A stretch of 64,000 nucleotides of DNA from Octopus sinensis (taxonomy: Eukaryota), in assembly GCF_006345805.1 (NCBI RefSeq), contig NC_042998.1:84320001-84384000 (forward strand), in the 5' to 3' direction. Made by a program: the position numbers and the translations under genes. The notes under the pieces are model-generated. The model was given only the letters and a program-made list of their open reading frames with translations, had not been told where the DNA came from and searched no databases. This document shows positions 15,501 to 64,000 of this stretch, one piece after another. Positions within the stretch are counted from its first letter, which is position 1. Every line of letters starts with the position of its first letter.

Positions 15501-17879
15501 CTGGCATGGGTTGGACAGAACTTCTTGAAATATTATTCTATGGCTGGATGCTTTTCCTGATGCCTATCTTTACTTGTTTGCAAGTCAGATCTTTGTGCAT
15601 TTTCATTGAATTGCTGATATACTGCTTACAAGAGACGTAAACAATGTCAAGCAGTGTCAACACAATGATAAACAGTCTAAAATGTGTACACACACACACA
15701 CCATCATGATGGTGATCATTATTATTTAACATCCGTCTTTCATGTTGGCAAAGGCTGGATGAGTCAACATGATGCACTGAATCAGAGAATTGCACCAAGC
15801 TCCAATATTTACTATGGCACATTTTCTATGGCTCAATACCCTTACTGTTGACCGGCTTCTCTACAGTTTCCATCTAGCAGATTTTACTCTTAAGATGTTG
15901 GTAAGCTGAAGGCTTTAGTGGAAGACAGTTGCCCAAAGTGCTCCATGGATGGGGTGGGGGGAAACAAATCTGAAACCACATGGTTGCAAAGCAAACTTCT
16001 TAACCACAGAACCATACTTGTACCTGCAAAGTAATTAAATTCTTGCCAATTACAAAATACTTTCATTGATTTTGGCAATGAGTTGTTCTCACTCCTAGTA
16101 CACTACTACCACCACCACCACCACCATCATTATCATCATCATAACGTCCACATTTCCATGCTTGCATGGATCAGATAGAATTTGCTGAGGCAGATTTCTA
16201 TGGTTGGATGTCCTTCATGTTGCCAACCCTCACTTTTTCCCAAGTAAGGTAATATTTCTACATAGATGGATATGTTTCCAAGGAAGATTGGAAAGAAAGG
16301 ATGCTGCTACAGATAAATATTTACATATTGCTGTACTGAATTACTGGGTGTTAATTGAGAAAAATCTTCTGACATACACCTTGCATCATAAAACAAAGTG
16401 TCACAAACTAGACACGCCAATGAGGATCATCAAAAACAGGCCTGATTCTCTCTCTTCTCCCCCCCCCCCCCACACACTTTGTTTTTACATTTATATTTTC
16501 GAAAGAAGAGGAGAAAGGTTTTTTGGACATTAATGTAGTTGTATATTATTGAAGCAGCTGTTCTTTCTAATGACTCAACTCAGCTATGAAGCAGGAGTGA
16601 GGCAAGGAACCTATTCTGTCTGGTGTACAGACTGAAACAAGGTATTTTGACTTCTACTGTGACATATGCAACATTTCTAAGTTACTTCTACAGATTTTCT
16701 ACAGAATTTAGAGCCAGCGCTGACAGTTAGGATGCTTCATATACTAATACGTTTGTGACTGAAGATAGAAAAATATGTAACAGATGTGTATACATATTTC
16801 AAGAATTCTTGCTCCTTCAGTACCATATCCAACCAATTAACTATCCAAGAACACATTGCTTAAATACCCAATAAGTTTATTGGTGTAACACTATTGTATA
16901 GACCAATTTACATATTAAACACATTCCTGGCAACTGGTACATCATCATCATCATCATTTAACATCCGTTGTCCATACTGGCATGTACTGGACGGTTTGCC
17001 TGGGGCTGGCAAGCTAGAAGGCTGCACCAGACTCTAATCTGATTTGATATGGTTTCTATGGCTGGATGCCCTTCCTAATGCCAACCACTCTGAGAATGTA
17101 TTGGGTACTTTTACATGCCACTTGTATGGGTGCCATTTGTGTGACACCGGTATCTGCCATGACTGTGATTTTTGCTTGGCTTGATGGGTCTTCTTCTCAA
17201 TCATGGCATAATGTCAAAAGTTTTGGTCATTGCCTCTGTGAGGCCCAATGCTCAAAAGGTGCTTTTTACATACCACCAGCATCAGCTACGACTACCATTT
17301 CACTTGGCTTGATAGGTCTTCTAAAACACAGCATATCATTATCATCATCGTCATCATCTAACGTCCATTGTCTATGCTGGCATGGGTTGGCATGCTGGGA
17401 GGCTGTGCCAGGCTCCAGTCTGATTTGGCATGGTTTTCTATAGCTGGATGCCCTTCCTAACACCAACCACTCTGAGAGTGTAATGGAATAGTTGGCATTA
17501 GGAAGGGCATCCAGCTGTAGAAAACCATGCCAAATCAGACTGGAGCCTGGCACAGACTTCCAGTGTGCCAGCCCAGTCAAACTGTCCAACCCATGCCAGC
17601 ATACATATTAATTACTCATAGGGATACCTTATTTCAATTAAGCAACCTTAATATACTACCAAACATATTAAAGTATTTAAAAGTCAATACTATATCCTAC
17701 TTTTGAGAATTTATATAGGCGCAAGAGTGGCTGTGTGGTAAGTAGCTTGCTTACCAACCACATGGTTCCGGGTTCAGTCCCACTGTGTGGCACCTTGGGC
17801 AAGTGTCTTTTACTATAGCCTCAGACTGACCAAAGCCTTGTGAGTGGATTTGGTTGATGGAAACTGAAAATGCCTGTTG

Positions 17880-17910
<31 letters not shown>

Positions 17911-20900
17911 GTGTGTGTGTGTTTGTGCGTCTGTGATTGTCCCACCACCACCATCGCTTGACAACCAATGGTGGTGTGTTTACATCCCCGTAACTTAGCG
18001 GTTCGGCAAAAGAGACCGGTAGAATAAGTACTAGGCTTCCAAAGAATAAGTCCTGGTACTGATTTGCTTGACTAAAGGTGGTGCTCTAGCATGGCCGCCG
18101 TCAAATGACTGAAACCAGTAAAAGAGAGATAGGTTAAAAGTGATTGTATAAACCTTTGATATAGCTAGTAGTATATCATGATTGCAAAATGAAATACAAT
18201 GTTCCTACCAGCAATCAATATACACAACATGGCTATAACAGTATTTGAACTCATGACCATATGGTCAGTAATATAGCAACCTTTACCACACATCAACTAT
18301 AGCTCTTGTATTTGGCTGATCAAAACTTTACCACTTCACTGACGCTGAAGGTTGATATGTGATATTTGTGCTGCAGAGTAACTCAAAGATTTCTCACGTT
18401 TTATTTGTATATGTATATTTTTTACTCATTTATCTTAACTCTTGATTAGAAAGCAATCATTTCTTCATTAACCTTAGCAGAAGTTTTGATAATTCTGTAA
18501 AGAAAACACATTTTTAACCACCCAACCTCTTACCACCATCACTCATCTCTCTTTCTCTCTCTCTCTCCCTCTCCTTTTGCCCATCCTTCTTGAGGCAGAA
18601 TTTGTTGTTTTTGCTTTTCTTTACAAATTGACATTTGAAGAACGGATAACACTGAAGTCTGTACTGTATCTCAGCACTGGCTACCAGACTCACCTCCAAG
18701 CTTTGGCACCCTGCAAACATATTAAATGAAACTTTCTGTTAAGCAAATTGGAACTTAGTTCTATTACTATTATACGGCATAGGTCGTTAACCATATCAGG
18801 AGCTGATATTCCAATTAATTTTTAAAAGATGAGGCACGTCTTATCTTTGACTGAGATTAGATTTGTTTAGCTTGAAACTGTTTGTTGTTGTTGTTGTCAT
18901 GATTCCTGTTAGCTTTTTATGTTTTCTTCTCAGACAATACACACACATCATCATCATCATCATCATCATATTTCTGCATTCAGTGCTAGTGTGGGTTGAA
19001 CATATTCATATCTCTGTTACTCTTTTACTTGTTTCAGTCATCTGACTGTGGCCATGCTGGAGCACCGCCTTTAGTTGAGGAAATCGGCCCCAGGACTTCC
19101 TCGACTTCTATAGTAGAAGACACTTGCCCAAGGTGCCACGCAATAAGACTGAACCCAGAACTATGTGGTTGGTAAGCAAGCTACTTACCACGCAGCCACT
19201 CCTGTGCTTCTATATATCTATATACATGCACACACACATATTGTGCATTAATGTTATAAGCATTTAATTTTTTTCGTTTAATTTACTTAATATTTATCTT
19301 TTGTTTGTAATTTTGTCTTAATCATAATTTCATTTTCATGTATATCTATGCCATAGGCACAGGCATGGCTGTGTGGTAAGAAGTCTGCTTCCCAACTACG
19401 TGGTTCTGGGTTCAGTCCCACTGCGTGACACCTTGGGCAAGTGTCTCCTATTATAGCGTCAGACCAACCAAAGCCTTGTGAGTGGATTGTGAAAGAAGCC
19501 CATCATGTATATGTACCACCATTGCTTTGCAACCATTGCTGTGTTTAAGTCCCCGTGACTTAGCAAAAAGGATCGATGGAATAAGTACTGGGGTCGATTC
19601 ATTTGACAAAGAATTCTTCATGGCAGTGCCTCAGAATGGTCACAGTCTAATGACTGAAACAATTAAAAGATAAAAGATAATTAAGATGGGCTTAAAACCT
19701 CTGCTAATATTTATGTTTGATCCAGAATTGTTAGCACGCCGGGCAAAATGCTTAGCAGTATTTCATCTGTCTTTACGTTCTGAGTTCAAATTCCTCCTAG
19801 GTCAACTTTGCCTTTCATCCTTTCGGGTCGATAAATTAAGTACTGGGGTCGATCTAATCAACTGGCCCCCTCCCCCAAAAATTTCGGGCCTTGTGCCTAG
19901 AGTAGAAAAGAACATTTATGTATGATTCTAAAGTGGCAAGCTGGCAGAATCATTAGCATGTTGGCTAAAATGCTTAGTGGCATTTTGTCTGTCACTACGT
20001 TCTGAGTTCAAATTCCACTAAGGTCAACTGTGCCTTTCATCATTTTGGGTTCCATTTCAGTACTTGGGGTGGTTGATGTAATCTTGTGCCAAAATTCGAA
20101 ACCAATATTTATGTTTGATCTGGGTCTATAAAGAAATCATTGCTTTCAAATGAGGACTAAAGATGAATACTCATGGCATCTGTATTGGAACACATTTGGG
20201 TTTATAAATATTGTTTGACCTCCCCAAGTTATCCCTGATTAAGCAGAGCTATCATCAAATGACTTCCAGCTGATACTATCACATCTTTTTGTTAGACAGT
20301 GTGAGCTAAGACTACATTAACCGAGATGTCCTAAGTTTTTAGATGAAAACTTGTGATATGGCTGCTATTTCTAGCAAACCAAACTTCTATCTTTAATCTT
20401 TTACTTGTTTCAGTCATTGGATTGTGACAATGTTGGGACTCTGCCTTGAAGGGTTTAGTCAAACAAATTGACCCTAGTACCAATTGTTAAGTGTGGTACT
20501 TGTTCTATTGGCCTCTTTTGCCAAACTGCTAAGTTGCAGGGACATAAACAAACCAACACCAGTTGTCCAGCAGTGATTGAATACAAACACAAAAAGGCAC
20601 ATGCATACATGCTAGCCCTGTTTATAGACTTACTATATAGGTTACATGTATTATACCATACCTTTATACTGTGTGGATTGAGATCCCTATTGTCAGGACC
20701 CTGATATTAGATAAAATGTTAATACTAATAGTATGCAAAAAATTTGTAGCTATTGAAATTGTTGCGTATAGAAGCAAATTGGCAGCTTATTTCTATGGGA
20801 TTAGTCAAATTGCTGTTGATGCCTCCTCTGATGAGAATCAATTAAGGCTATTCATTTTTTGCCAGCTGAGTGGACTTGAGCAACATGAAATGAAGTGTTT

Positions 20901-23368: not shown

Positions 23369-24685
23369 CTTGCAAAAACCTGTTGAGGCAAATGAAATCA
23401 AAATCACTGACGTGGCCGATGATAGTACCACCTGATTGGCACTTGTGGTATTGGAATGTTAAAGCACCATCCAAGTGTGATCATTGCCAGGGCCACCAAC
23501 AGGCTCCCATGCCGGTGGCACGTGAAAAACAACATTCGAGCATGGTCATTGCCAGTGCCACCTGACTGGCCCTCGTGGAAGGGCATCCAGCTGTAGAAAC
23601 TTTGCCAGTCTAACTGTCCAGCCCATGCCAGCATGGGAAGTGGACGTTAAACGACGACAATGATGATATATACACCCATTTGTAGAAATGTTCTTAGAAT
23701 ATTTTTGTGTCACTCTGTCTCTTTCCTTTACTTTGCTTCTTAATTTCCTTTCTTTCTCTGTTACCCTCCTCCCACTATCATATGACCTGTAACAACCTAA
23801 GGTGTTGACACTCTTTTTCACATTTCCTTCAACTGCACTGGTCACGATTTTCTGAGCTCCTTGCTCTTCTCCTCCCATGTCTATAGTCCTTTATGACAGT
23901 TTTCATTTCTCCTTCACATTATCCACTTTTGTCTTGTCCTACAGCCCAAAGGCTTTTTTTTTTCGTACATGTATTACCATTATTAATTGTTGACTTCATG
24001 TGGTCCTAAGCCTTTATTCTGTTGATTGTTTTGTCCCTCGTCCATCCACCAATGGTCTCATTCTCAGCAAGTTTCTTGTCGGTGCCTCCAGAGTGGAAGC
24101 TATATTATTGATAAAGGCTGAAATTGCATTTGACCCTCTGGCCGATAACTAGTGAACAGTTGGTGACCTGTGTTTTCTGTTCACCTGTCATCATTATCAT
24201 CATCGTTTAACATCTGTTTTCCATGCTGGCATGGGTTGGATGGTTTGACTTAGGTTTGGAGAGCCAGCGGCTGCACCAGGCTCCAATCTGATCTGACAAT
24301 GTTTCTACAGCTGGATGCCCTTCCTAACACCAACCACTCCAAGCATGTAGTGGGTGCTTTTTACGTGCCACCGGCACAGGAGCCGGTTAGGTAGGCCTGG
24401 CATCAATCACATTCGGATAGTGCTTTTTACATGCCACTGGCACAGGGTCAGTCAGGGGGTACTGTATTGGCCACATTTGGGTGATGCTTTTTATGTACCA
24501 CCAGCATGGGAGCGAGTTAGGTAGACCTGGCATTGACCATGTTCAGATGGTCCTTTTTACGTGCCATTGCCACGGGAGCCAGTCAGGGGGCACTGGTCAC
24601 AGCTACGATATTGGTTTTACTTGACTCATATATATGTATGTATATGTAGGTGATGATGATGATGATGATGATATATATATATATA

Positions 24686-26220
24686 TCATCATCATCATCA
24701 TCATCATCATCATTTAACGTCTGCTTTCCATGCTAGCATGGGTTGGACGGTTCAACTGGGGTCTGGGGAGCCCGAAAGCTGCACCAGTCCAGTCAGATCT
24801 GGCAGTGTTTCTACAGCTGGATGCCCTTCCTAACGCCAACCACTCCGAGAGTGTAGTGGGTGATTTTATGTGCCACCGACACAGGTGCCAGACGAGGCTG
24901 GCAAACGGCCACGCTCGGATGGTGTTTTTATGTGCCACCGACACAGGTGCCAGACGAGGCTGGCAGACGGCCACGTTCGGATGGTGTTTTTATGTGCCAC
25001 CGACACAGGTGCCAGATGAGGCTGGCGAACGGCCACGATCGGATGGTGTTTGTTACGTGCCCACAACAAGGAGGCCAGTTGATGCAGTACTGGCTACGGC
25101 TACGTTCAGATGGTTTTCTTGTGTGCCACCGGCACCACAGAGATACAAATTCCATTGATGTTCATCTATTTTGATTTGTTTTGATTTTCAGTTGCCTCAA
25201 CAGGTCTTCACAAGTGTCACAAGAAGGAAGGTATGCACAGGTGGACTGACTACGTCCCAGGTAGGGATCACAGGTTATGGCCTGACTAGTCTTGCCGGGT
25301 TTCGGATGGTGTTTTTATGTGCCACCGACACAGGTGCCAGATGAGGCTGGCGAACGGCCACGATCGGATGGTGTTTGTTACGTGCCCACAGCACGGAGGC
25401 CAGTCGGTGCGGTACTGGCTACGGCCACGTTCGGATGGTTTTCTTGTGTGCCACCGGCACTGGTACCACAAAGATACAATTCCATTAATGTTCATCTATT
25501 TTGATTTGTTTTGATTTGATTTGATTTGTTTTGATTTCATTTTGATTTTCACTTGCCTCAACAGGCCTTCACAAGTATCACAAGGAGGAAGGTATGCACA
25601 GGTTGACTGACTACGTCCCAGGTAGGGGCCATGGGATATGGCCTGACTAGTCTTGCCGGGTCTTCGGATGGTGTTTTTATGTGCCACCGACACAGGTGCT
25701 AGATGAGGCTGGCGAACGGCCACGATCGGATGGTGTTTGTTATGTGCCCACAGCACGATGGCCAGTCGATGCGGTACTGACTACGGCCACGTTCGGATGG
25801 ATTTCTTGTGTGCCACAGGCACTGGTACCACAAAGATACAAATTCCATTGATGTTCATCTATTTTGATTTGATTTGATTTGATTTTCACTTGCCTCAACA
25901 GGTTTTCACAAGTGTCACAAGAAGGAATGTATGCACAGGTGGACTGACTAGTCTTGCCGGGTCTTCGGAAGGTGTTTTTATGTGCCATCGACACAGGTGC
26001 CAGATGAGGCTGGCGAACGGCCATGATCGGATGGTGTTTGTTACGTGCCCACAGCACGGAGGCCGGTCGATGCGGAACTGGCTACGGCCACGTTCGGATG
26101 GTTTTCTTGTGTGCCACCGGCACTGGTACCACAGAGTGTGTGCCACCGGCACTGGTACCACAAAGTGTGTGTCACCGGCACTGGTACCACAAAGATACAG
26201 ATTCCATTGATGTTCATCTA
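24686..26220 (-). mobile_element. Multimeric RTE-3'UTR retro-element: about 4 units of 300-370 bp plus (TGA)n tail
   Basis: ctagtcttgccggg junctions at about 25286, 25647 and 25948; CAT tail at 24686-24712. Reverse complement of about 39420-40836. Confidence 0.9.
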
Positions 26221-29085
26221 TATATATATATATATATGAAATATACATTCAGTACAGGACATCACTGACAAATGAAAAACACATAAACACATAAGAGTTA
26301 AGTACAGGACAAAATACCAAAAGAAGTCTATCTCCTTCTCAGTTGTTGACTGTTTTACTACTCTCTATTTCGTGCTTTTAGTGAGAAGATAGGAAAACTT
26401 TATAAGACAGCAGCATCCAGAAATTTTTAAAATATAAAATTTGTGGAGAGTTAGGGCTTCAAACAAACAAACAACAACAGAATGGATGTACAAAATAAAC
26501 AGTTGACAAGGACAAACATTAATAGCTGTTAGGCCAAGACGAATTATAATGGGTAATGCCTGGGAGAAATTTTTAAAGGAAATAGAATAAATAGAAGAGA
26601 AAATATGTCGGGAGGCAAGAGAAATTACATGCAGTCCAGTGGGCGTCTTGTCCAAAAAAGACAGAGAAATGGCCTGTAGTCACATGTGAGCAACAGGCAG
26701 AGGGGAAGGGGGTCAAGAGAGAGGATGAAGGAAAGAAACAAAAGGAGTGAGGAGAAGGAATGAAAGCTAGTAGAGAGTGGGAGAAAGAGGACAGCAAAGA
26801 AGGAGGGGGAGAAGCGGAAAATATAGAGGATTATAGAGGGATAGAGAGAAAGAAAGAGAACAGTGGAGTCGCAGAAATTATATAAATGTAGGAACTACAT
26901 TTATGTACACACGCACACACACTTGATTGTGCATACCCTTGTCTAGGTATCATGTAATGGTTGTAAATCAGTTTCATTGTCATACAGGTGAGGTTATAAA
27001 CAAAATTGAATACACATACACAATGTGTGTGTGTTATTTGTTCATGAGCCAGCTGCATTTTAGGCATAAGAGAATTACACCTGATGCCTCTTATACCTAA
27101 ACTAACAACACACACCATGTGTAGGTGTGTTTGATTTTATTTATATAGCTCAAGCTGCTTCTAATTCACAAGTGAGGTTGTTCATTTCCAGTCTACTGTG
27201 TAAAACATGTCAGACCATGGGGAATATTGTTTTGCTTGGAAATGGGTGATGGTTGGCAACAGCAAGGGCATCTGGCTAAAGAAGATGTGCTTCAACAAAT
27301 TTTATCCGACACATGCAAGCATGGTAAAGTAGACGTTAGATGATGATTTTATATATCCCATTGTTGTCGTCATTGTCATCATCATCATCATCATTTAACA
27401 TCTGCTTTCCTTGGTGGCATGGGTAGGATGGTTTAACTGAGGACTTGCAAGCCAGTAGGCTGGACCTAGCTTCAATTTGATCTGGCAAGGTTTCTATAGC
27501 TGGATGCTCTTCCTAACGCCAACCACTTCGAGAGTGTAGGGGGTGCTTTTTACGTGCCACTGGCACAGGAGCCAGTCAGTGGGCACTGGCATCAACCTCA
27601 TATCTATATACAGACACACACACACACATATTTATGCACACGCATGCACACATGCAATTCTTGCATAAGGATATGTGTATGTGTGTGAATTACATTATCT
27701 TCAAATAAAGAAAAAGCAATATGCTCTGGAAAAATTCTCACCAATGAACAAAATAATCTTTGGTGAAAGATGTTGCTAAAATTAATTTCAATCAAGAGTC
27801 TCCTGCAATACTCAAGACAACATGAAAGGAAGTCTCCTACTTATAAAATGAATACAAAATAGAATTCATTATCTTATTCATTTATCATCCACTTTCTCAT
27901 GCTTGCATTGGTCAAATAGAATTTGTGGAGGAAGATTTTTCTATGGCTGGCTGCCCTTCCTGTCACAAACCTTCGTCTGTTTCCAAGCAAGGTAATATTT
28001 CCTTATGACCAGACATGTTTTATCACAGAAGACTGGAAACAAATAACCTTGCTTGTATGATGATGACACATTTACAATCATCACATGATGTGTAGCCACA
28101 AATACACATATCTACATACATACATACACACAACAATCTTCTTTCAGTTTTCCCCCTACCAAATACACTCACAAAGCTTTGGTTGGAGCTACATTAATAA
28201 ATGCTTGTCCAAGGTGCTGTACAGTAGATTTTAACCCAGGAAGATTCAGAAACAATGTTCTCAACTCCACAGCCACACCTGTGCCTATTGACTTTTTCTT
28301 AATTCCATGATATTGCACTATGTAAGCAGTAAGAAAGAATGTTCAGACATTGGGTCCCACTGAGGAGATGGCAAGGGACTGAGACCTTTGGCGATTTGCT
28401 ATGCTTGAGAAGAAATGTCAAGCTAAGTAAAACCATGGCCATCTATACATACTGGCATGTGCTGCTGTCTCTGTCTTGAAGGCTTGCAGGTGCTGGTGCC
28501 ATGTAAAGTGCAGCCATTTCAGTGTCACATAAAAAGCACCTGTGCCAGTATCACCTAAAAAAACATTCAGTACACTCTGTAAAGTGGTTGGCGTTAGGAA
28601 GGGCATCCAGCCATAGAGGCCATGCCAAAGCAGATGATTGGAGTCTGGGCAACTCTTCAGCTAGCCCGTTCCTGTCAAACTGTCTGACCCACACCAGCAT
28701 GGAAAACAGACGTTAAATGATGATGAGATAAGAAACCATCCCTGCTCTCTCCACTCCTTTATCTACCGGTTTGGCCTCACTTAAATAATGTCATCATGTT
28801 TTACCGCTTTCAGCATTCCTCAGTAATTACTTGTATTAACTGTTCTGCCAAAGCAGCTTTAAAACAGAAAGCTGCACTGATGCTGCATGCCGAGACATCT
28901 AAGCCTCTGCGTTGGCACACGTCTGGGTGACTTAGACACCACCTACTTTTGGCTTGCCATCAAGGTGTTCATCTGTTGCCGCCTTTGGTAGGCTGCAATT
29001 TTATTAGCATGCTTACACATACACATATGTATACACACAAACACAAACACACATATATATTCATTTGTATAGGCACACACACACA

Positions 29086-29088
<3 letters not shown>

Positions 29089-29152
<64 letters not shown>
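29089..29152. repeat. (TA)n microsatellite within a CA/TA-rich tract
   Basis: Direct reading. Confidence 0.95.
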
Positions 29153-29161
<9 letters not shown>

Positions 29162-30199
29162 TATACATATATATGTATACACTTACATATTAACATTTAT
29201 ACACACATATACACATACACACACTCACACACATATACCTGTGCATATACATATGTGTGTGTGTGTGTGTATATCACATCTTACTTAAGGCTGCAACAGT
29301 TGTATATTAATATCACATACACACAGACTTTGTTGATATACAGAACGTTAGTGAGCAGGCTGCAGCTTAAACTTACATCACATTATAAAACAAACATCTT
29401 TCAGATTTATGATAGCACAAACAAACATTCTGAGTACTTAGAAAAAAAAAAATCGATGTTTTATTTTTGTTTAATTTTTTTTTCTCCTTTTTATTTAGCT
29501 AAAAATGTAAAAAAAAATCATGAAGTGTAGATCTTCTAATAACATGATTAAAAAGAAGAGTGGGCAGTTAGGAAATAAATGGCAGGTTTTTGTAATATAT
29601 ACTTTTTTTTTCCTTCTGTGTCTATCGAACCAATCTGTCTCATATTTTATCGTGTTTGAAAACGAGTTAAATTATTATGAGTCATCATTGAGTTGTGATA
29701 GTAGGTATATAGCTAACCAACTATAGAGGTCACCAATAAAGGTGTGCTATGTGTGTGTGTTTGTGTGTGTTACCATATGTTCAGCATTTTGAAAATGTGT
29801 GTTTTCTAAATCTTTTGGATATTTTGTCAATAAATTAGTAAGTAGATTTAGTGTACCAAAAAAACTATGACAGGTAGCTAGTTTGTTTTTTAAGAAGAAT
29901 ATGGACTGCACATAAATAATGTTTTGTTTCAGCTGTTTTTCAAACTGGAAAAGTTGTGATATATATATTATCATCATCATGATCATCATCATTTAATGTT
30001 TGTTTTCCATGCTGGACAATTTTGACAGGAGCTGGCAAACTGGAGGGCTGCAGCAAGCTCCAATCTTCTGCTTTGGCATGGTTTCTTCCCCAACACCAAC
30101 CACTTTACAAAGTGTAGTGGATGCCTTTTGCCTGACACCAGCGCAGGTACTTTCCACATGGTACTGGCATGGGTGCTTTTCATGTGGTACCAGCATCTA

Positions 30200-37634: not shown

Positions 37635-38471
37635 CAAACTGTGTGTGTATTTATTTAATTGTATTGCTTAGCTAAGTTTTAGTGCTTGATTTACTTATAA
37701 TGTATGGTATTCATAAGCAGCTGAGGTAGTGAGAATTCACATTTTTAAACCATATCATAAGTATAGAGCATAGTATTAACCCTTAAGAGATGATAGGGCC
37801 AATCTATCAGCCAAAAAGTCAAATGATGAAGATTGTATTGGTTCAATCAGTTTCCTACATGAATATATATAGTTTTATACATGTAAAGTAATTACTTTAT
37901 TTTTTATAATTTTTTTTTTTTGAAAAATAAGTGCATGCCCTCTGTAGGGCTTGTGAAAAGGGCTCCATCTTCTTGGCACTGAAACTCCAAATGAGGCTCT
38001 GTCTCCAAAGTGTTAATTAATAAATGACAAAAAAGTAGGTGTTACATAATTAAATCCATTAGCTTACAGCTGTTTTTGCTGTAAGAAATACTGTGCCCTA
38101 TAGTGAATATTAGCATGACTTCTCACAGTTTCATCAGAGCCTTTAATGATTGGACAATGTATATGAAAAAATACATCATTCAATCATTATGGGCTTTGAT
38201 GAAGATGAGATAGTGGTGGTGTTGGAAAATGTGATCCTGAGTCTTTGATAGAGATGGGATGGTCACAACCAGAATGTCATGGATTGTTGATCTGGATCAT
38301 GGATGACCTGTGTTTAAACAACATCAATAAATTAACTTAAAGTGTCTTTGTATATAATTGGGATAAAATTAATAATAATGGTTTCAAACTTTGGCAGAAT
38401 TCAGAGGGAGTGGTTTTGTCAATTACATTGGTCCCTTCTGATCAAATGGTACTCATTTTATCAAACCCAGG

Positions 38472-40806
38472 CACTTTGTGGTACCAGTGCCTGTGGCACA
38501 CAAGAAAACCATCCGAACGTGGCCGTAGCCAGTACCGCATCGACTGGCCTCCGTGCTGTGGGAACATGGTGGCACATAAAAACACCATCCGAAGACCCGG
38601 CAAGACTAGTCAGGTCATAACCCGTGGCCCCTACCTGGGACGTAGTCAGTCCACCTGTACATACCTTCCTTCTTGTGACACTTGTGAAGACCTGTTGAGG
38701 CAAGTGAAAATCAAAACAAATCAAAATAGATGAACATCAATGGAATTTGTATCTTTGTGGTACCAGCGCCGGTGGCACACAAGAATCCATCCGAACGTGG
38801 TCGTAGTCAGTACCGCATCACTGGCCATCGTGCTGTGGGCACATAACAAACACCATCCGATCATGGCCGTTCGCCAGCCTCATCTAGCACCTGTGTCGGT
38901 GGCACATAAAAAACACCATCCGAAGACCCGGCAAGACTAGTTAGGCCATAACCCATGGCCCCTACCTGGGACGTAGTCAGTCCACCTGTGCATACCTTCC
39001 TCCTTGTGATACTTGTGAAGGCTTGTTGAGGCAAGTGAAAATCAAAATCAAATCAAAACAAATCAAAATAGATGAACATCAATGGAATTTGTATCTTTGT
39101 GGTACCAGTGCCGGTGGCACACAAGAGAAAACCATCCGAAAGTGGCCGTAGCCAGTACCGCATCGACTGGCCTCCGTGCTGTGGGCACATGACAAACACC
39201 ATCCGATCGTGGCCGTTCGCCAGCCTCATCTAGCACCTGTGTCGGTGGCACATAAAAACACCATCCGAAGACCCGGCAAGACTAGTCAGGCCATAACCCA
39301 TGGCCCCTACCTGGGACGTAGTCAGTCCACCTGTGCATACCTTCCTTCTTGTGACACTTGTGAAGACCTGTTGAGGCAAGTGAAAATCAAATCAAAACAA
39401 ATCAAAATAGATGAACATCAATGGAATCTGTATCTTTGTGGTACCAGTGCCGGTGGCACACACTTTGTGGTACCAGTGCCGGTGGCACACAAGAAAACCA
39501 TCCGAACGTGGCCGTAGCCAGTTCCGCATCGACCGGCCTCCGTGCTGTGGGCACGTAACAAACACCATCCGATCATGGCCGTTCGCCAGCCTCATCTGGC
39601 ACCTGTGTCGGTGGCACATAAAAACACCTTCCGAAGACCGGCAAGACTAGTCAGTCCACCTGTGCATACCTTCCTTCTTGTGACACTTGTGAAGACCTGT
39701 TGAGGCAAGTGAAAATCAAAATCAAATCAAAATAGATGAACATCAATGGAATTTGTATCTTTGTGGTACCAGTGCCTGTGGCACACAAGAAATCCATCCG
39801 AATGTGGCCGTAGTCAGTACCGCATCGACTGGCCATCATGCTGTGGGCACATAACAAACACCATCCGATCGTGGCTGTTCGCCAGCCTCATCTAGCACCT
39901 GTGTCGGTGGCACATAAAAACACCATCCGAAGACCCGGCAAGACTAGTCAGGCCATATCCCATGGCCCCTACCTGGGACGTAGTCAGTCCACCTGTGCAT
40001 ACCTTCCTCCTTGTGACACTTGTGAAGGCCTGTTGAGGCAAGTGAAAATCAAAATGAAATCAAAACAAATCAAATCAAATTAAATCAAAATAGATGAACA
40101 TTAATGGAATTGTATCTTTGTGGTACCAGTGCCGGTGGCACACAAGAAAACCATCCGAACGTGGCCGTAGCCAGTACCGCACCGACTGGCCTCCGTGCTG
40201 TGGGCACGTAACAAACACCATCCGATCGTGGCCGTTCGCCAGCCTCATCTGGCACCTGTGTCGGTGGCACATAAAAACACCATCCGAAGACCCGGCAAGA
40301 CTAGTCAGGCCATAACCTGTGGCCCCTACCTGGGACGTAGTCAGTCCACCTGTGCATACCTTCCTTCTTGTGACACTTGTGAAGACCTGTTGAGGCAAGT
40401 GAAAATCAAAATAGATGAACATCAATGGAATTTGTATCTTTGTGGTGACACGTGGCACACAAGAAAACCATCCGAACGTGGCCGTAGCCAGTACCGCATC
40501 GACTGGCCTCCGTGCTGTGGGCACGTAACAAACACCATCCGATCGTGGCCGTTTGCCAGCCTCGTCTGGCACCTGTGTCGGTGGCACATAAAAAACACCA
40601 TCCGAGCATGGCCGTTTGCCAGCCTCGTCTGGCACCTGTGTCGGTGGCACATAAAATCACCCACTACACTCTCGGAGTGGTTGGCGTTAGGAAGGGCATC
40701 CAGCTGTAGAAACACTGCCAGATCTGACTGGACTGGTGCAGCTTTCGGGCTCCCCAGACCCCAGTTGAACCGTCCAACCCATGCTAGCATGGAAAGCGGA
40801 CGTTAA

Positions 40807-57145: not shown

Positions 57146-59476
57146 TTGCCACTATGAAAGGTTGCTGAATGAGGAAAATGAATGGGATAAAGAGAGTCTG
57201 CCGAATGTCGACCCAACAGAGGGACCAGCAATCTGAGTTGACAGTTCCTTAGTAGTAAGGCAATTACAAGCATGAAAACAGGGTGGGCCCCTGGCCCATC
57301 AGGAATTACTGCAGAAATGCTCAAAATATCTGGTAGTGTTGGCTATAGCCTAGTCACCCGTATAGTTAACCAGGTGATACACGAAGGAGTCATACCCAAT
57401 GACTGGTGTAGCAGCATAATAGTCAACTGCTACAAAGGTAAAGGTGACGCTCTAGATACAAATAACTACAGGGGTATCAAGCTGCTGGATCAGGTAATGA
57501 AGGTCATGGAGAGGGTTATAGCCCAACTAATTAGAGAGAGAGTTAGCTTAGATGAGATGCAGTTTGAGTTCGTGCCAGGGAAAAGTACTACTGATGCTAT
57601 ATTCTTGGTAAGACAGCTGCAGGAGAAATACCTAGCCAAAGATAAGCCCCTGTACCTGGCTTTTGTTGATATGGAGAAAGCCTTCGACAGGGTCCCCCGA
57701 TCCCTTATCTGGTGGTCAATGAGGAAACTAGGGATAGATGAATGGTTAGTGAGAGCTGTGCTAGCCATGTAAGGTGAGGGTTGGCAACGAGTACAGTGAA
57801 GAATTCCGGGTAGAGGTTGGGGGTCCACCAAGATTCAGTCCTCAGTCCCCTCCTATTTATCATAGTCCTCCAGGCAATAACGGAGGAATTCAAGACAGGA
57901 TGCCCCTGGGATCTCCTCTATGCTGATGACCTTGCTCTAATTGCTGAGTCACTATCAGAACTGGAAGAGAAGTTTCAGGTGTGGAAGCAAGGTTTAGAAT
58001 TGAAGGGCCTTAGAATCAACCTAGCCAAAACCAAAGTCCTAATAAGTAGGAAGGTAGACCAATCACAAACGCCTTCAGGTAGATGGCCCTGCTCGATCTG
58101 TAAAAAAGGCGTAGGTAGAAACTCTATAAAGTCCACCAAGTGTAAGCTATGGACACATAAGAGGTGTAGCAATGTCAAAAGAAGGCTAACTAGAAAAATA
58201 GTTTTTATCTGTGGCAGATGCTCAGGAGCAATAAACATTGAAAATGTGCAGAGACCAACTTCTACCATGTTCCAGGGAGAAAAACTAGAAGTAGTTGATA
58301 ACTTCTGCTACCTGGGTGACCGGGGGTGGGTGTGCTGAAAGTGTAACTGCTAGAGTAAGAATAGCCTGGGAAAAGTTTAGAGAGCTCTTACCCCTGCTGG
58401 TGACAAAAGGCCTCTCGCTCAGAGTAAAAGGCAGACTGTATGATGCATGTGTACGTACAGCCATGCTACATGGTAGTGAAACATGGGCTGTGACTGCTGA
58501 GGATATGCGTAAGCTCGCAAGAAATGAAGCCAGTATGCTCCGATGGATGTGTAATGTCAGTGTCCATAATCGACAGAGTGTAAGTACCTTGAGAGAAAAG
58601 TTGAACCTAAGAAGCATCAGTTGTGGTGTGCAAGAGAGATGTTTGCGCTGGTATGGTCATGTGACGAGAATGGCTGAAGATAGTTGTGTGCAAAAGTGCC
58701 ACACCCTAGCAGTTGAGGGAACCTGTGGAAGAGGTAGACCCAGGAAAACCTGGGACGAGGTGGTGAAGCATGACCTTCGAACTTTAGGTCTCACCAAAGA
58801 AATGACTAGAGACTGAGACCTATGGAAGTATGCTGTATGTGAGAAGACCCGGCAAGACTAGTGAGAACATAACCTGTGGCCTACATACCTTTCCTTCTTG
58901 GGACACAAAACTCCACTTGTGAAGACCCGTTGAGGCAAGTGAAAATCAAAATCAAAACAAATCAAATCTGATATCAGAAAGCAGAACCAAAATCGAAGTC
59001 GATCAACATCAATGGAAATTGCAGCTGTGGTACCAGTGCCGGTGACAAGTAAGCGAACCATCCGATCGTGGCCGTTGCCAGCACCGCCCCAACTGGCCTC
59101 CGTGCCGGTGACACGTAAAAGCACCATGCGTTCGTGTCCGTTGCCAGCCTCGCCTGGCCCCCATGCCGGTGGCACGTAGCACCATCCGTTCGTGGCCATT
59201 GCCAGCCTCGCCTGGCCCCCGTGCCGGTGGCACATAAAAAGTACCATCCGTCCGTGGCTGTTTGCCAGCTCCATCTGGCACCTGTGCAGGTGGCACGTAA
59301 AAAGCACCCACTACACTCACAGAGTGGTTGGTATTAGGAAGGGCATCCAGCCGTAGAAACACTGCCAGATCAGACTGGGCCTGATGCAGCCTTCTGGCTT
59401 CACAGACCCCAGTTGAACCGTCCAACCCATGCTAGCATGGAAAGCGGATGCTAAATGATGATAATGATGATGATGA
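57146..59476 (+). mobile_element. 5'-truncated, inactivated RTE-clade LINE (RT with YADD, PHD-like finger, 3' UTR, (TGA)n tail)
   Basis: ORF pieces 57272-57772, 57817-58338 and 58295-58816 carry NYRGIKLL, QFEFVPGKSTTDAIF, FVDMEKAFDRV and LLYADDL (YADD at 57919-57930). Broken by frameshifts and stops; tail of TGA repeats ends near 59476. Confidence 0.93.
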
Positions 59477-60265: not shown

Positions 60266-60426
60266 TTATGGTTGAAAATTTGGTAGGGCACAGTTGCATA
60301 CAATACAGCTGGCAGTCCAAGTAGCACACGAGTACTCGTTACACTGCTCATCACTTCCTCCACAGGCAGCATTACAACTAGTCAAGCTATCATAGCAGAG
60401 TGATGTCTCCACACAAGTTACTGTAG
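60266..60426 (-). CDS. Terminal exon of the secreted Cys-rich peptide (TVTCVETSLCYDSLTSCNAACGGSDEQCNEYSCATWTASCIVCNCALPNFQP*)
   Basis: Strong acceptor (catttcttttttttccag). Only the phase-1 frame stays open, matching the upstream donor. 9 Cys in 52 codons, TAA at 60268-66, AATAAA about 40 nt downstream. Confidence 0.82.
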
Positions 60427-60548
60427 CTGGAAAAAAAAGAAATGGATACTTGGAATAATATCATCAATCATCATTTAACATCCATTTTCCATGCTGATAT
60501 GGGTTGCATGGTTTGACAGGAACTGTCAAGGCTGGGAGCCACATCAGT

Positions 60549-61907
60549 TAACTGGGAAGATAGTTTTTGTATGTGGCAAATGCTCAGGTGCTATAAACAC
60601 TGAATATGTGCAGAGAACAGCTTCTGTCACATTCCAGGGAGAAAAACAAGTAGTTTATAGTCTCCATTACCTAGGGGACCAAGTTAGTAGCAGGGATGGA
60701 TGCTCTGAAAGTGTAACTGCTAGAATAAGAATAGCCTGGGCAAAGTTCAGAGAGCTCCTACCTCTGCTGGTGACAAAGGGCCTCTCACAAAGGTAGACTA
60801 TGATGCATGTGTATGAACAGCCATGCTACATGGCAGTGAAACATGGGCCATGATTGCTGAGGACATGCGTAAGCTTGCAAGGAATGAAGCCAGTATGCTC
60901 CGCTGGATGTGTAATGTCAGTGTGCATATATAACAGAGTGTAAGTGCCCTGAGAGAAAAGTTGGATTTAAGAAGCATCAGATGTGGTGTGCAAGAGAGAT
61001 GACTGCGCTGGTATGGTCATGTGTTGTGAATGAATAAGGACAGCTGCATGAAAAAAGTGTCACACCCTAGCAGTTGAGGGAACTTGTGGAAGAGGTAGAC
61101 CCAGGAAGACCTGGGATAAGGTGGTGAAGCACAACCTTTGAACATTGAGCCTTACCAAGACAATGACCAGTGACCAAGACTTTTGGAGATATGCTGTGCT
61201 TGAGAAGATCTGACAAGCCAAGTGAGACCATAACCCATGGCCTATGCCAGTGGGCGTAACTAGCCCACATATGAATACCCTCATTCATTGGACAATAAAC
61301 TTTGCTTGCGAAGACCTAGGCAAGTGAAATCAAAATCACTGACGTGGCCGATGACTACCGCCTGATTGGCACTCGTGCCGGTGGAACATTAAAAGCACAT
61401 CCGAGCCTGGGGTGAAATCACCCCACTTATGAGTACCCCTCATTCATTGAACAATAAACTTTGCTTGTAAAGACCTATTGAGGCAAGTGAAATCAAATCA
61501 AAATCGCTGACGTGGCTGATGACAGTACCACTTGATTAGCACTAATGCCAGTGGAACGTTAATGGCACATCCGAGCGTGATTATTGCTAGGGCTACAGAT
61601 TGGCTCCCATGCTGGTGGCACGTGAAAAACAACATTCGAGTGTGGTCGTTGCTAGTGCCACTGGACTGGCTTTCGTACAGGTAGCATGTAATAAACACCT
61701 TTTGAGCGTGGTTGTTGCCAGGCCCTCCAGCTGGTGGCATGTAAAAGCACCCACTACACTGTCAAAGTGGTTGGCGTTAGGAAGGTTATCTAGCTGTAGA
61801 AACTTTGCCAGATCAGATTGGTGCCGGTGCAGCCTTCTGGCTCACCAGTCCTCAGTCAAACCATCCAACCCATGCCAGCATGGAAAGTGGACGTTAAACG
61901 ATGATGA
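60549..61907 (+). mobile_element. Degenerate 3' fragment of the RTE LINE, antisense within the peptide-gene intron
   Basis: GKIVFVCGKC...ARIRIAWAKFRELLPLLVTKG and 3' UTR homologous to 58200-59476. Confidence 0.85.
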
Positions 61908-63914
61908 ATATAAAACCCTAACATAAAATTATACCAATTAAAAACATTATTTCAAATTAAAATAAATAAGAGAAATTTACATCTATTTTTGAGGTCTGAA
62001 CCTGACATGACTTTTCACTTTATCATCAAATCCAAGAAAACTTAACAGAATTCATATATCTTTAAATTTGCAACTTATTAATTTTAATGAAATCAGAGAA
62101 AACAGATTTGTGGCAGTTTCAATATGGAGTGTTTCAATAGTTCGATTGACTGAAATACTTATGTGATTGAATTAGCATCTCTGTGGCTTACTACCCCACA
62201 AACATATGTCCCCTTAACATCATTTTCAGATGGATTAAGAATGGCATGTGTACTTTACTACTTGCATTTGCAGAGGCATTTACCTGGGGTGGGTTGAGAC
62301 AACCATGACAAATGAGTTCACCATATCCTTCACAAATGCTGACTACATCTGACGTTAGTCCACTGGGAAAGCAATCATTTTGCAAGGACACTGAACTTTT
62401 TACAGTTGAATGCCCTTCCTGTTGCCAACCCTCATCTGTTTCTAAGCAAGGTGATATGTTCCTTTAGCCAGGTATGTTTTTCAGAGAAAGAAACAACATT
62501 GCTTGTATGATACTCATCTACAACCATCACATAATGTCAAGACAAAGGTATACACACACACACCATCATCATCATTTAACATCTGTTGGCCATGCTGGTA
62601 TGGGTCGGACAGTTTGATTGGGCTGGCATGCCAGAAGGCTGCACCAGGATCCAGTCTGATTTGGCAAGGTTTTCTACAGCTGTATGCCCTTCCTAACACC
62701 AACCACTCTGAGAGTGTAATGGGTGCTTTTATGTGCCACCAGCACAGGTGCCATTTGCTTGACACCGGCATCTGCCACGACTGTGATTTTGCTCAACTTG
62801 ATGGGTCTTCTTCTCAAGCACAACATAATGCCAAAATGTTTTGGTCATTTCTTCCATGAGGCCCAACACTTGAAAGGAGCTCAGCCACTTTGCCTCCATG
62901 AGGCCCACATATATATATATATATAAAACCTATGTAGTAGGTATAGAAATAGGGCTAATTTAGCTATTTCTCCATAGATCGAAAAAATGACAAACAACAT
63001 TAATTGATTTTCAAATCTTATAAGATTCTCATCAGAGACACATCAATTTGACCATCATCATCATCATCGTTTAACGTTCGTTTTCCATGATGGATGGTTC
63101 GACTGGGGTTTGGGAAGCCAGGAGGCTGATCTGGCAGTGTTTCTACAGCTGGATGACCTTCCTAATGCCGACCACTCCGAGAGTGTAGTGGGTGCTTTTT
63201 ACATGTCACCAGCACAGGGGCTAGAAGCAGCCAATCAGTTTATATATTCAATAATTCCAGTAGCTACAGAGAATTGAAGCTACTAATTTTCATACTGTAC
63301 ATGTTAACACTTTAATATTAGGAGCCTGTTAATGGGGATATAGTCCACACAGTACTAAGGTATGATGTATGTAACCTATAGAGTAAATATATAAACAGGG
63401 CTGCTGAGACCCCTTTCAGTCATGACTGACCATGGGATTGTACCTAGAAAGTTACCCTTCCAGGTACAAGGTTGTTTATGGAAGATCAGCAGTCACCCAT
63501 GCATACCAGCCTCCCCTCTCCATGCCACCAGTGTTATCCAAGGGAAAGGCAAAGGCCGATACAGCTTGGCACCTGTGACATTGCAACTCATTTCTGCAGC
63601 TGAGTGGACTGAAGCAATGTGAAATAAAGTGTCTTGCTCAAGAACACAACATGCAGCCAACCCACAAAGCCAACGTGAGTGATGATGCCATGTAAAAAGC
63701 ACCCAATACACTGTAAAATGGAAACCCTGCCAAATCAGACTAAGAAACCTGGTAAGATCCTTGGCATTGCCAGTTCCTGCCAAGCTGTCCAACCCATGCC
63801 AGCATAGAAAACAGACATTAAATGTTGATGATGAATAGTATTTTTTCTTTATTTAGTTTCAACTTTCTTTTAGGAGTTAGTGTTATGTCAATGAATAAAG
63901 GTTTGATACGTTAC

Positions 63915-63966
63915 CAATGAGAATTGCCCCACACAGCAAAAGAATCAAGGAAATGTATTGTTTCAT
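63915..63966 (-). CDS. Signal-peptide exon of a small secreted Cys-rich peptide (MKQYISLILLLCGAILI, phase 1)
   Basis: ATG at 63966-64, 7 nt after an ttttccag acceptor (exon start 63973). Basic N-terminus plus hydrophobic core; GTAACG donor at 63914. Confidence 0.8.
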
Positions 63967-64000
63967 ATTTATTCTGGAAAATTAATAAAATCATATTTAA

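Follow-up and report, generated by a model that had tools for sequence, protein, structure and literature searches.

We analysed a 64,000-nucleotide stretch of the Octopus sinensis genome (NCBI RefSeq assembly GCF_006345805.1, contig NC_042998.1, positions 84,320,001 to 84,384,000 of the forward strand; hereafter the window, numbered from its first letter) around a two-exon gene model on its minus strand. The best explanation for this model, which we favour with moderate confidence, is a single-copy, Octopus-lineage-restricted gene for a small secreted disulfide-rich peptide; that it is a real, functional gene at all appears quite likely. The model was proposed in a first-pass annotation, and strand reading together with scripted splicing of the window reproduced it exactly. 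The claimed exons 63966-63915 and 60426-60266, joined over a phase-1 GT-AG intron, give a spliced coding sequence (CDS) of 213 nt and a 70-aa precursor, MKQYISLILLLCGAILIATVTCVETSLCYDSLTSCNAACGGSDEQCNEYSCATWTASCIVCNCALPNFQP. The parts of the model, in the order of transcription, are as follows.

63967..63975, minus strand: candidate 3' splice acceptor and the 7-nt leader AATAAAT before the ATG, read from sequence alone (AG at 63975-63974 after TTTTATTAATTTTCC)
63966-63915, minus strand: coding exon 1, 52 nt (17 codons plus 1 base), from Met1 to the first base of codon 18
60427..63914, minus strand: phase-1 GT-AG intron, 3,488 nt
60266-60426, minus strand: coding exon 2, with the last residues of the signal peptide (ATVTC), the acidic mature peptide of ~48 aa with eight cysteines, and the stop codon
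60191..60265, minus strand: short 3' untranslated region (UTR) of roughly 60 nt, with AATAAA at 60226-60221 and ATTAAA at 60196-60191

The start codon (ATG, 63966-63964) has an A at -3, a context that we call strong. Exon 1 ends in ATTG/GTAACG, so that the donor is G/GTAACG; the exon 2 acceptor is TTTCTTTTTTTTCCAG, and the frame closes with TAA at 60268-60266. The AATAAA that had been claimed after the stop is present 39 nt 3' of it, the second polyadenylation signal (ATTAAA) lies 30 nt further on, and T/GT-rich sequence is found downstream of both. The AG acceptor claimed 7 nt before the ATG is also there, behind a T-rich tract. Exon 1 DNA is single copy in the genome, and both exons and the splice sites are unique sequence. 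The gene is missing from the default list of open reading frames (ORFs): no ATG opens the Cys-rich frame of exon 2, and the entries listed at the two exons are a 72-aa ORF that overlaps exon 2 in a different frame and a 27-aa ORF that reads exon 1 unspliced. The gene had been described as hidden, which holds for such a prokaryote-style ORF track and fails for the protein databases, since its Octopus bimaculoides orthologue (A0A0L8H122) is already a UniProt predicted protein.

The precursor has the generic features of a secreted protein: an n-region (MKQY), a 13-residue hydrophobic core (ISLILLLCGAILI) with a mean Kyte-Doolittle hydropathy of up to 3.3, a c-region (ATVTC), and small residues at -3/-1, with V-x-C preceding Val23. 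The predicted mature peptide is ~48 aa long with a net charge of -5 and has eight Cys in the arrangement C-x6-C-x3-C-x6-C-x4-C-x6-C-x2-C-x-C. This spacing, the five acidic residues and the lack of Lys and Arg were all correct on recount. It is doubtful that the cleavage expected after VTC is conserved, since O. bimaculoides has Asn in place of Cys22, a residue poorly suited to the -1 position of a signal peptidase site. The site is therefore uncertain, with cleavage predicted after Thr21 or Cys22 and less likely after Ala18. Because Cys22 is not conserved, it is not part of the framework, and the O. sinensis peptide could carry a ninth cysteine depending on where it is cleaved.

A word-indexed search of 5.8 billion clustered proteins identified one relative, the UniProt/UniRef entry A0A0L8H122 from O. 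bimaculoides, which is also 70 aa long and identical at 58/70 positions without gaps. With phmmer over 1.84 billion representative proteins we recovered only this entry and one spurious repeat protein, and PDB sequence searches with the single sequence and with a profile gave no match. We did not detect a paralogue: a six-frame protein search of the genome (a 2.72-Gb assembly in 13,516 contigs) returned the gene itself alone. Two weak genome matches (E 3.4 and 9.6) were dismissed as paralogues, their translations being without the Cys frame. A genome-wide DNA pattern search for the exact Cys spacing was unusable, with 8,286 matches versus 2,413 for the reversed control, owing to TGY microsatellites. 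The accession and the peptide strings were absent from 8.4 million full texts. The earlier description of a lineage-specific disulfide-rich peptide agrees with the protein and genome searches, in which the O. bimaculoides orthologue is the sole relative.

An alternative that we consider unlikely is that there is no functional gene here, and that a fortuitous combination of ORF and splice sites, or a near-neutral proto-gene, happens to be predicted in the closely related O. bimaculoides as well. The background frequency of Cys-rich ORFs speaks for this alternative. Counting as such any ORF of 40 aa or more in which 40 residues contain 8 Cys or more, we expect 0.56 per simulated 64-kb third-order Markov window, so that Cys richness alone is unremarkable; the real window holds one other, with 9 Cys (17830-17958), which is made by TG microsatellites. 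The combination of signals points the other way. The scan required an ATG, an early Lys or Arg, a hydrophobic stretch of 10 residues or more, a GTR donor and, within 5 kb, an AG acceptor preceded by a pyrimidine tract; the ORF continued in phase had to be 25-70 aa long and contain 8 Cys or more, and AATAAA had to follow. Exactly one model, this gene, came out of the real window and none out of 100 Markov windows, whether or not a poly(A) signal was demanded; since the criteria were drawn up with the case already known, the result is indicative and no strict p-value. The tract before the acceptor, the polyadenylation signal and the start context are, moreover, all strong. As a separate observation, TG/TA/CA microsatellites at 17830-17958 and 28900-29530 yield spurious Cys-rich ORFs, in which 40 aa can hold as many as 9 Cys, which is a caution for peptide hunts by Cys count in the O. 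sinensis genome.

Comparison of the two octopus proteins bears on the same question. They differ at 12 positions (I15V, C22N, T25A, S26T, L32M, S34N, Q45H, N47S, E48Q, A52T, A64D and P70T), and A0A0L8H122 keeps all eight mature Cys, Trp54 and the 70-aa length without insertions or deletions (indels). Of the 17 whole codons of exon 1, 16 encode an identical residue in O. bimaculoides. The net charge is -5 in both species, the acidic residue lost through E48Q being offset by the one gained through A64D, and such compensating substitutions argue against a meaningless frame. Conservation of the Cys frame in a second octopod is thus complete (8/8). The lineages of O. sinensis and O. bimaculoides split about 13-34 million years ago, and a mean autosomal synonymous divergence (dS) of 0.123 has been published for this pair (PMC10925132). 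We simulated neutral substitution on the CDS and the splice dinucleotides at this dS, ignoring indels. The ORF and splice sites stayed intact in 12.5% of runs; they were intact with no more than 12 amino-acid changes in 2.4%, and intact with all eight Cys kept in 1.3%. All of these outcomes occurred jointly in 0.5% of runs, so that the observed conservation has a probability of about 0.005 under neutrality. This joint value varies with the divergence assumed, from 5% at d=0.08 to 0.1% at d=0.15.

The minimum nonsynonymous divergence (dN) is 0.083, which is about 0.68 of the mean dS and indicates a protein that changes fast around a fixed Cys scaffold. Secreted effector and signalling peptides commonly evolve in this way. 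The substitution pattern is also not far from what near-neutral evolution would produce, and the high dN/mean dS can be read in favour of a proto-gene. Several further points weigh against a functional gene. The conservation comes from one species pair with a mean dS assumed, and it would be non-significant if the local neutral divergence were only 0.05-0.08. That eight Cys should survive when 10 of 48 residues change has by itself a p of about 0.13. The only homologue, A0A0L8H122, is a predicted protein of a congener. Exact-product look-ups for a transcript or contig of either orthologue found nothing, in collections that may lack records close to this genome, and the peptide was absent from supplementary files published with studies of O. 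vulgaris salivary glands and skin mucus. The setting, gene-poor and rich in transposons, also suits the alternative. The composite model, unique against 100 simulated windows, and the conserved orthologue are the grounds on which we call the gene probably real.

Beyond the end of the window we found a candidate donor, AAGCAG/GTATGC, at the window-equivalent position 64211/64210; together with the AG at 63974, it would delimit a 237-nt intron in the 5' UTR. A non-coding upstream exon joined at the acceptor 63974 is plausible from this arrangement. Inside the putative 5'-UTR intron is a TATA element (TATAAAAAAA, at about 64170-64161), and if transcription began there and the leader stayed unspliced, it would include three upstream ATGs, of which one overlaps the start codon out of frame. 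An upstream out-of-frame ATG at 63994 opens a 27-codon upstream ORF (63994-63911, minus strand) that runs across the main start codon and ends at the exon 1 donor (TGG TAA). If the acceptor at 63974 is used, this upstream ORF would be removed by splicing; otherwise it would be expected to dampen translation.

We then considered the family to which the peptide might belong. A0A0L8H122 carries the automatic UniProt/UniRef name 'ShKT domain-containing protein', which presumably reflects a marginal match to the PROSITE profile PS51670. The label raises the alternative of a divergent ShKT peptide, with the two-helix ShK fold, one extra disulfide and a role as an ion-channel modulator. Two features of the sequence fit: the N-terminal C-x-D-x4-C agrees with the start of the ShK consensus in 26 of the genome's own ShK domains, and with two Cys set aside the other six stand in a roughly ShK-like order. 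However, Pfam ShK (PF01549) had no match at E<=10 for either orthologue, and a PF01549 scan of the genome found 55 ShK exons, exon 2 not among them. A custom hidden Markov model of the 26 octopus ShK domains gave -2.4 and -1.8 bits for the two peptides, scores equalled by 18-23% of composition-preserving shuffles, and the hhalign probability was 0.9%. The peptide has eight conserved Cys versus six in ShK, and its C-terminus reads C-x2-C-x-C (C-IV-C-N-C) rather than the invariant ShK C-x3-C-x2-C. In ShK the disulfides are C1-C6, C2-C4 and C3-C5, and a Lys-Tyr dyad is functional (PMC6409789). Neither mature octopus peptide has a Lys or Arg for this dyad, which is a functional feature and no membership criterion for ShKT. 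An ShKT peptide is thus very unlikely. The near-identical O. bimaculoides protein is already in public databases, and its ShKT label is not upheld by the profile tests.

The genuine ShK exons are an observation in their own right. The 55 exons, 54 of them above the Pfam cut-off, lie in tight tandem arrays across the genome, which suggests multi-ShK proteins or locally duplicated genes. The PF01549 scan placed the arrays at the following locations.

C3:89.83-89.92 Mb: ShK exon array
C23:25.93-25.99 Mb: ShK exon array
C1:61.63-61.65 Mb: ShK exon array
C3:52.72-52.73 Mb: ShK exon array
C6121: ShK exon array

The first-pass annotation had called the peptide defensin/toxin-like and of the CS-alpha-beta type. 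In this alternative, an invertebrate defensin-like or scorpion-toxin-like peptide would have a fourth disulfide, and its helix (C35-x3-C39) would be pinned to a strand (C61-x-C63). A CxxxC (C35-NAA-C39) and a CxC (C61-N-C63) do occur in the correct order, 21 residues apart, and are conserved in the orthologue. The arrangement of a signal exon and a mature exon around a phase-1 intron is also common for defensin and toxin genes. The pair of motifs in that order is, however, found in 12-18% of random placements of eight Cys in 48 residues. We detected no Pfam family match for either orthologue, all defensin and toxin models included, and a genome scan with Defensin_2 (PF01097) missed exon 2, its best matches elsewhere having an E of about 8. 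The octopus peptide is strongly anionic, in contrast to the cationic defensins. AlphaFold, suggested together with Foldseek as a check of the fold, gave two models of low confidence that disagree with each other. Model 1 (pLDDT, the predicted local distance difference test score, of 50) has a helix at SCNAAC and places the C-terminal cysteines in a beta-hairpin, as the fold would have; model 2 (pLDDT 59) has one long helix and coil, without the hairpin. Foldseek found no structural match in the PDB. We therefore regard a CS-alpha-beta peptide as quite unlikely. A likeness of the CGGSDEQC loop to LDL-receptor class A modules was also dropped, as there was no Pfam match and the similarity covered only four residues.

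Neither family assignment is supported, and on these tests the peptide fits neither the defensin nor the ShK family. The earlier statement that no named family could be recognised stands, with no match in Pfam or in the PDB and, among the protein representatives, only the orthologue and one spurious repeat protein.

The sequence shows that exon 1 encodes the core of the signal peptide and is separated from the mature exon by a phase-1 intron swollen to 3.5 kb by insertions of long and short interspersed nuclear elements (LINEs and SINEs). On the reading that we favour, a gene for a small secreted disulfide-rich peptide, the precursor would enter the endoplasmic reticulum and lose its signal at about residue 21-22, and the eight conserved Cys would form four disulfides. 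Lacking Lys and Arg, the peptide offers no site for prohormone convertases, and it also has no amidation signal, so that the product, of roughly 5.1 kDa and with a net charge of -5, would be secreted essentially as encoded. The mass calculated for Val23-Pro70 is about 5,075 Da in reduced form and about 5,067 Da with four disulfides. Having no basic residues, the peptide is unlikely to be a cationic antimicrobial that disrupts membranes, or a ShK-type K+ channel blocker acting through a Lys plug. From its composition, and with low confidence, we predict a stable soluble ligand of a protein target, acting as a pheromone or another chemical signal, or as a component of a secretion or of venom.

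It is possible, if doubtful, that the acidic C-x6-C-x3-C-x6-C-x4-C-x6-C-x2-C-x-C arrangement is a new cysteine framework and fold that arose within octopods for a lineage-specific extracellular role, for example as a water-borne pheromone or as a new class of salivary or venom ligand. Its origin may have been de novo, in intergenic sequence rich in transposons. As the evidence stands, the product is probably an ordinary lineage-restricted, fast-evolving acidic Cys-rich secreted peptide of modest general interest. Small secreted disulfide-rich peptides account for much of the lineage-specific chemistry of molluscs (venom, immune effectors and pheromones) and are often missed or mislabelled by pipelines. 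The octopus gene shows both annotation problems, being invisible to an ORF scan and having an orthologue whose automatic ShKT label fails the tests. If expressed, an acidic four-disulfide scaffold without Lys or Arg would be a new peptide family, worth a search for its structure and target. As it stands, it is one orphan peptide among many, useful as an annotation correction and a peptidomics candidate, and it changes the understanding of no system.

The neighbourhood of the gene is gene-poor and repeat-rich. In the 20 kb past the window edge we found only repeat-like ORFs, and scanning the window itself for tRNA genes and Rfam families gave no match. The intron consists mostly of transposon debris, made up of LINE 3' fragments and SINE-like pieces, and the LINE copy in it begins about 50-120 nt from the exon 2 acceptor. 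The repeats that we identified are listed below.

57242-58816, plus strand: decayed non-LTR (long terminal repeat) retrotransposon, just downstream of the gene, split by frameshifts into three ORFs (RVT_1, E 3.5e-12 and 6e-11)
about 60549-61244 (start 60479-60549) and 61743-61905, plus strand: second, 5'-truncated LINE copy, from the 3' half of this retrotransposon, in the intron, 82-89% identical to 58187-59462
62561-62743 and 63123-63231: SINE-like pieces in the intron
11201, 17068, 17450, 24823, 40666, 59313 and 62686, both strands: copies of the SINE-like core

The decayed retrotransposon also has a weak PHD-like finger. The SINE-like repeat has a 32-nt core (GCCCTTCCTAACACCAACCACTCTGAGAGTGT) with at least seven copies on both strands of the window versus none expected; neither ARAGORN nor Rfam detected a tRNA-like head in it. 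The repeat is the source of many long but spurious ORFs of the window (frames containing LDALPNANHSESVVGAF). Two GC-rich blocks, 24001-26000 and 38001-40000, have a GC content of 0.47-0.49 versus a window mean of 0.39. The second overlaps the repeat ORFs at 40075-40806, and the blocks are probably transposon bodies.

Three known systems resemble the octopus peptide in part. The ShKT domain (PF01549/PS51670) is likewise a small secreted disulfide-rich module of ~35-45 residues that opens with C-x-D-x4-C. It has six Cys and ends in C-x3-C-x2-C, whereas the octopus peptide has eight, is acidic and shows no profile similarity. The CS-alpha-beta defensins of molluscs with eight Cys (MGD/myticin type) share the signal exon, phase-1 intron and mature exon, as well as four presumed disulfides in fewer than 50 residues with a CxxxC upstream of a CxC. 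Their motif spacing differs, however, and they are cationic, whereas the octopus peptide has a net charge of -5, no G-x-C element and no profile match. Mollusc pheromones offer the third comparison. Attractin of Aplysia is a small acidic disulfide-rich protein that acts as a water-borne pheromone. It differs from the octopus peptide in the number and pattern of its Cys, with no sequence similarity in any search, and the analogy is functional only. Like the predicted octopus peptide, such pheromones are secreted, roughly 5-6 kDa in size, acidic, disulfide-stabilised, without internal processing sites, fast-evolving and restricted to a lineage.

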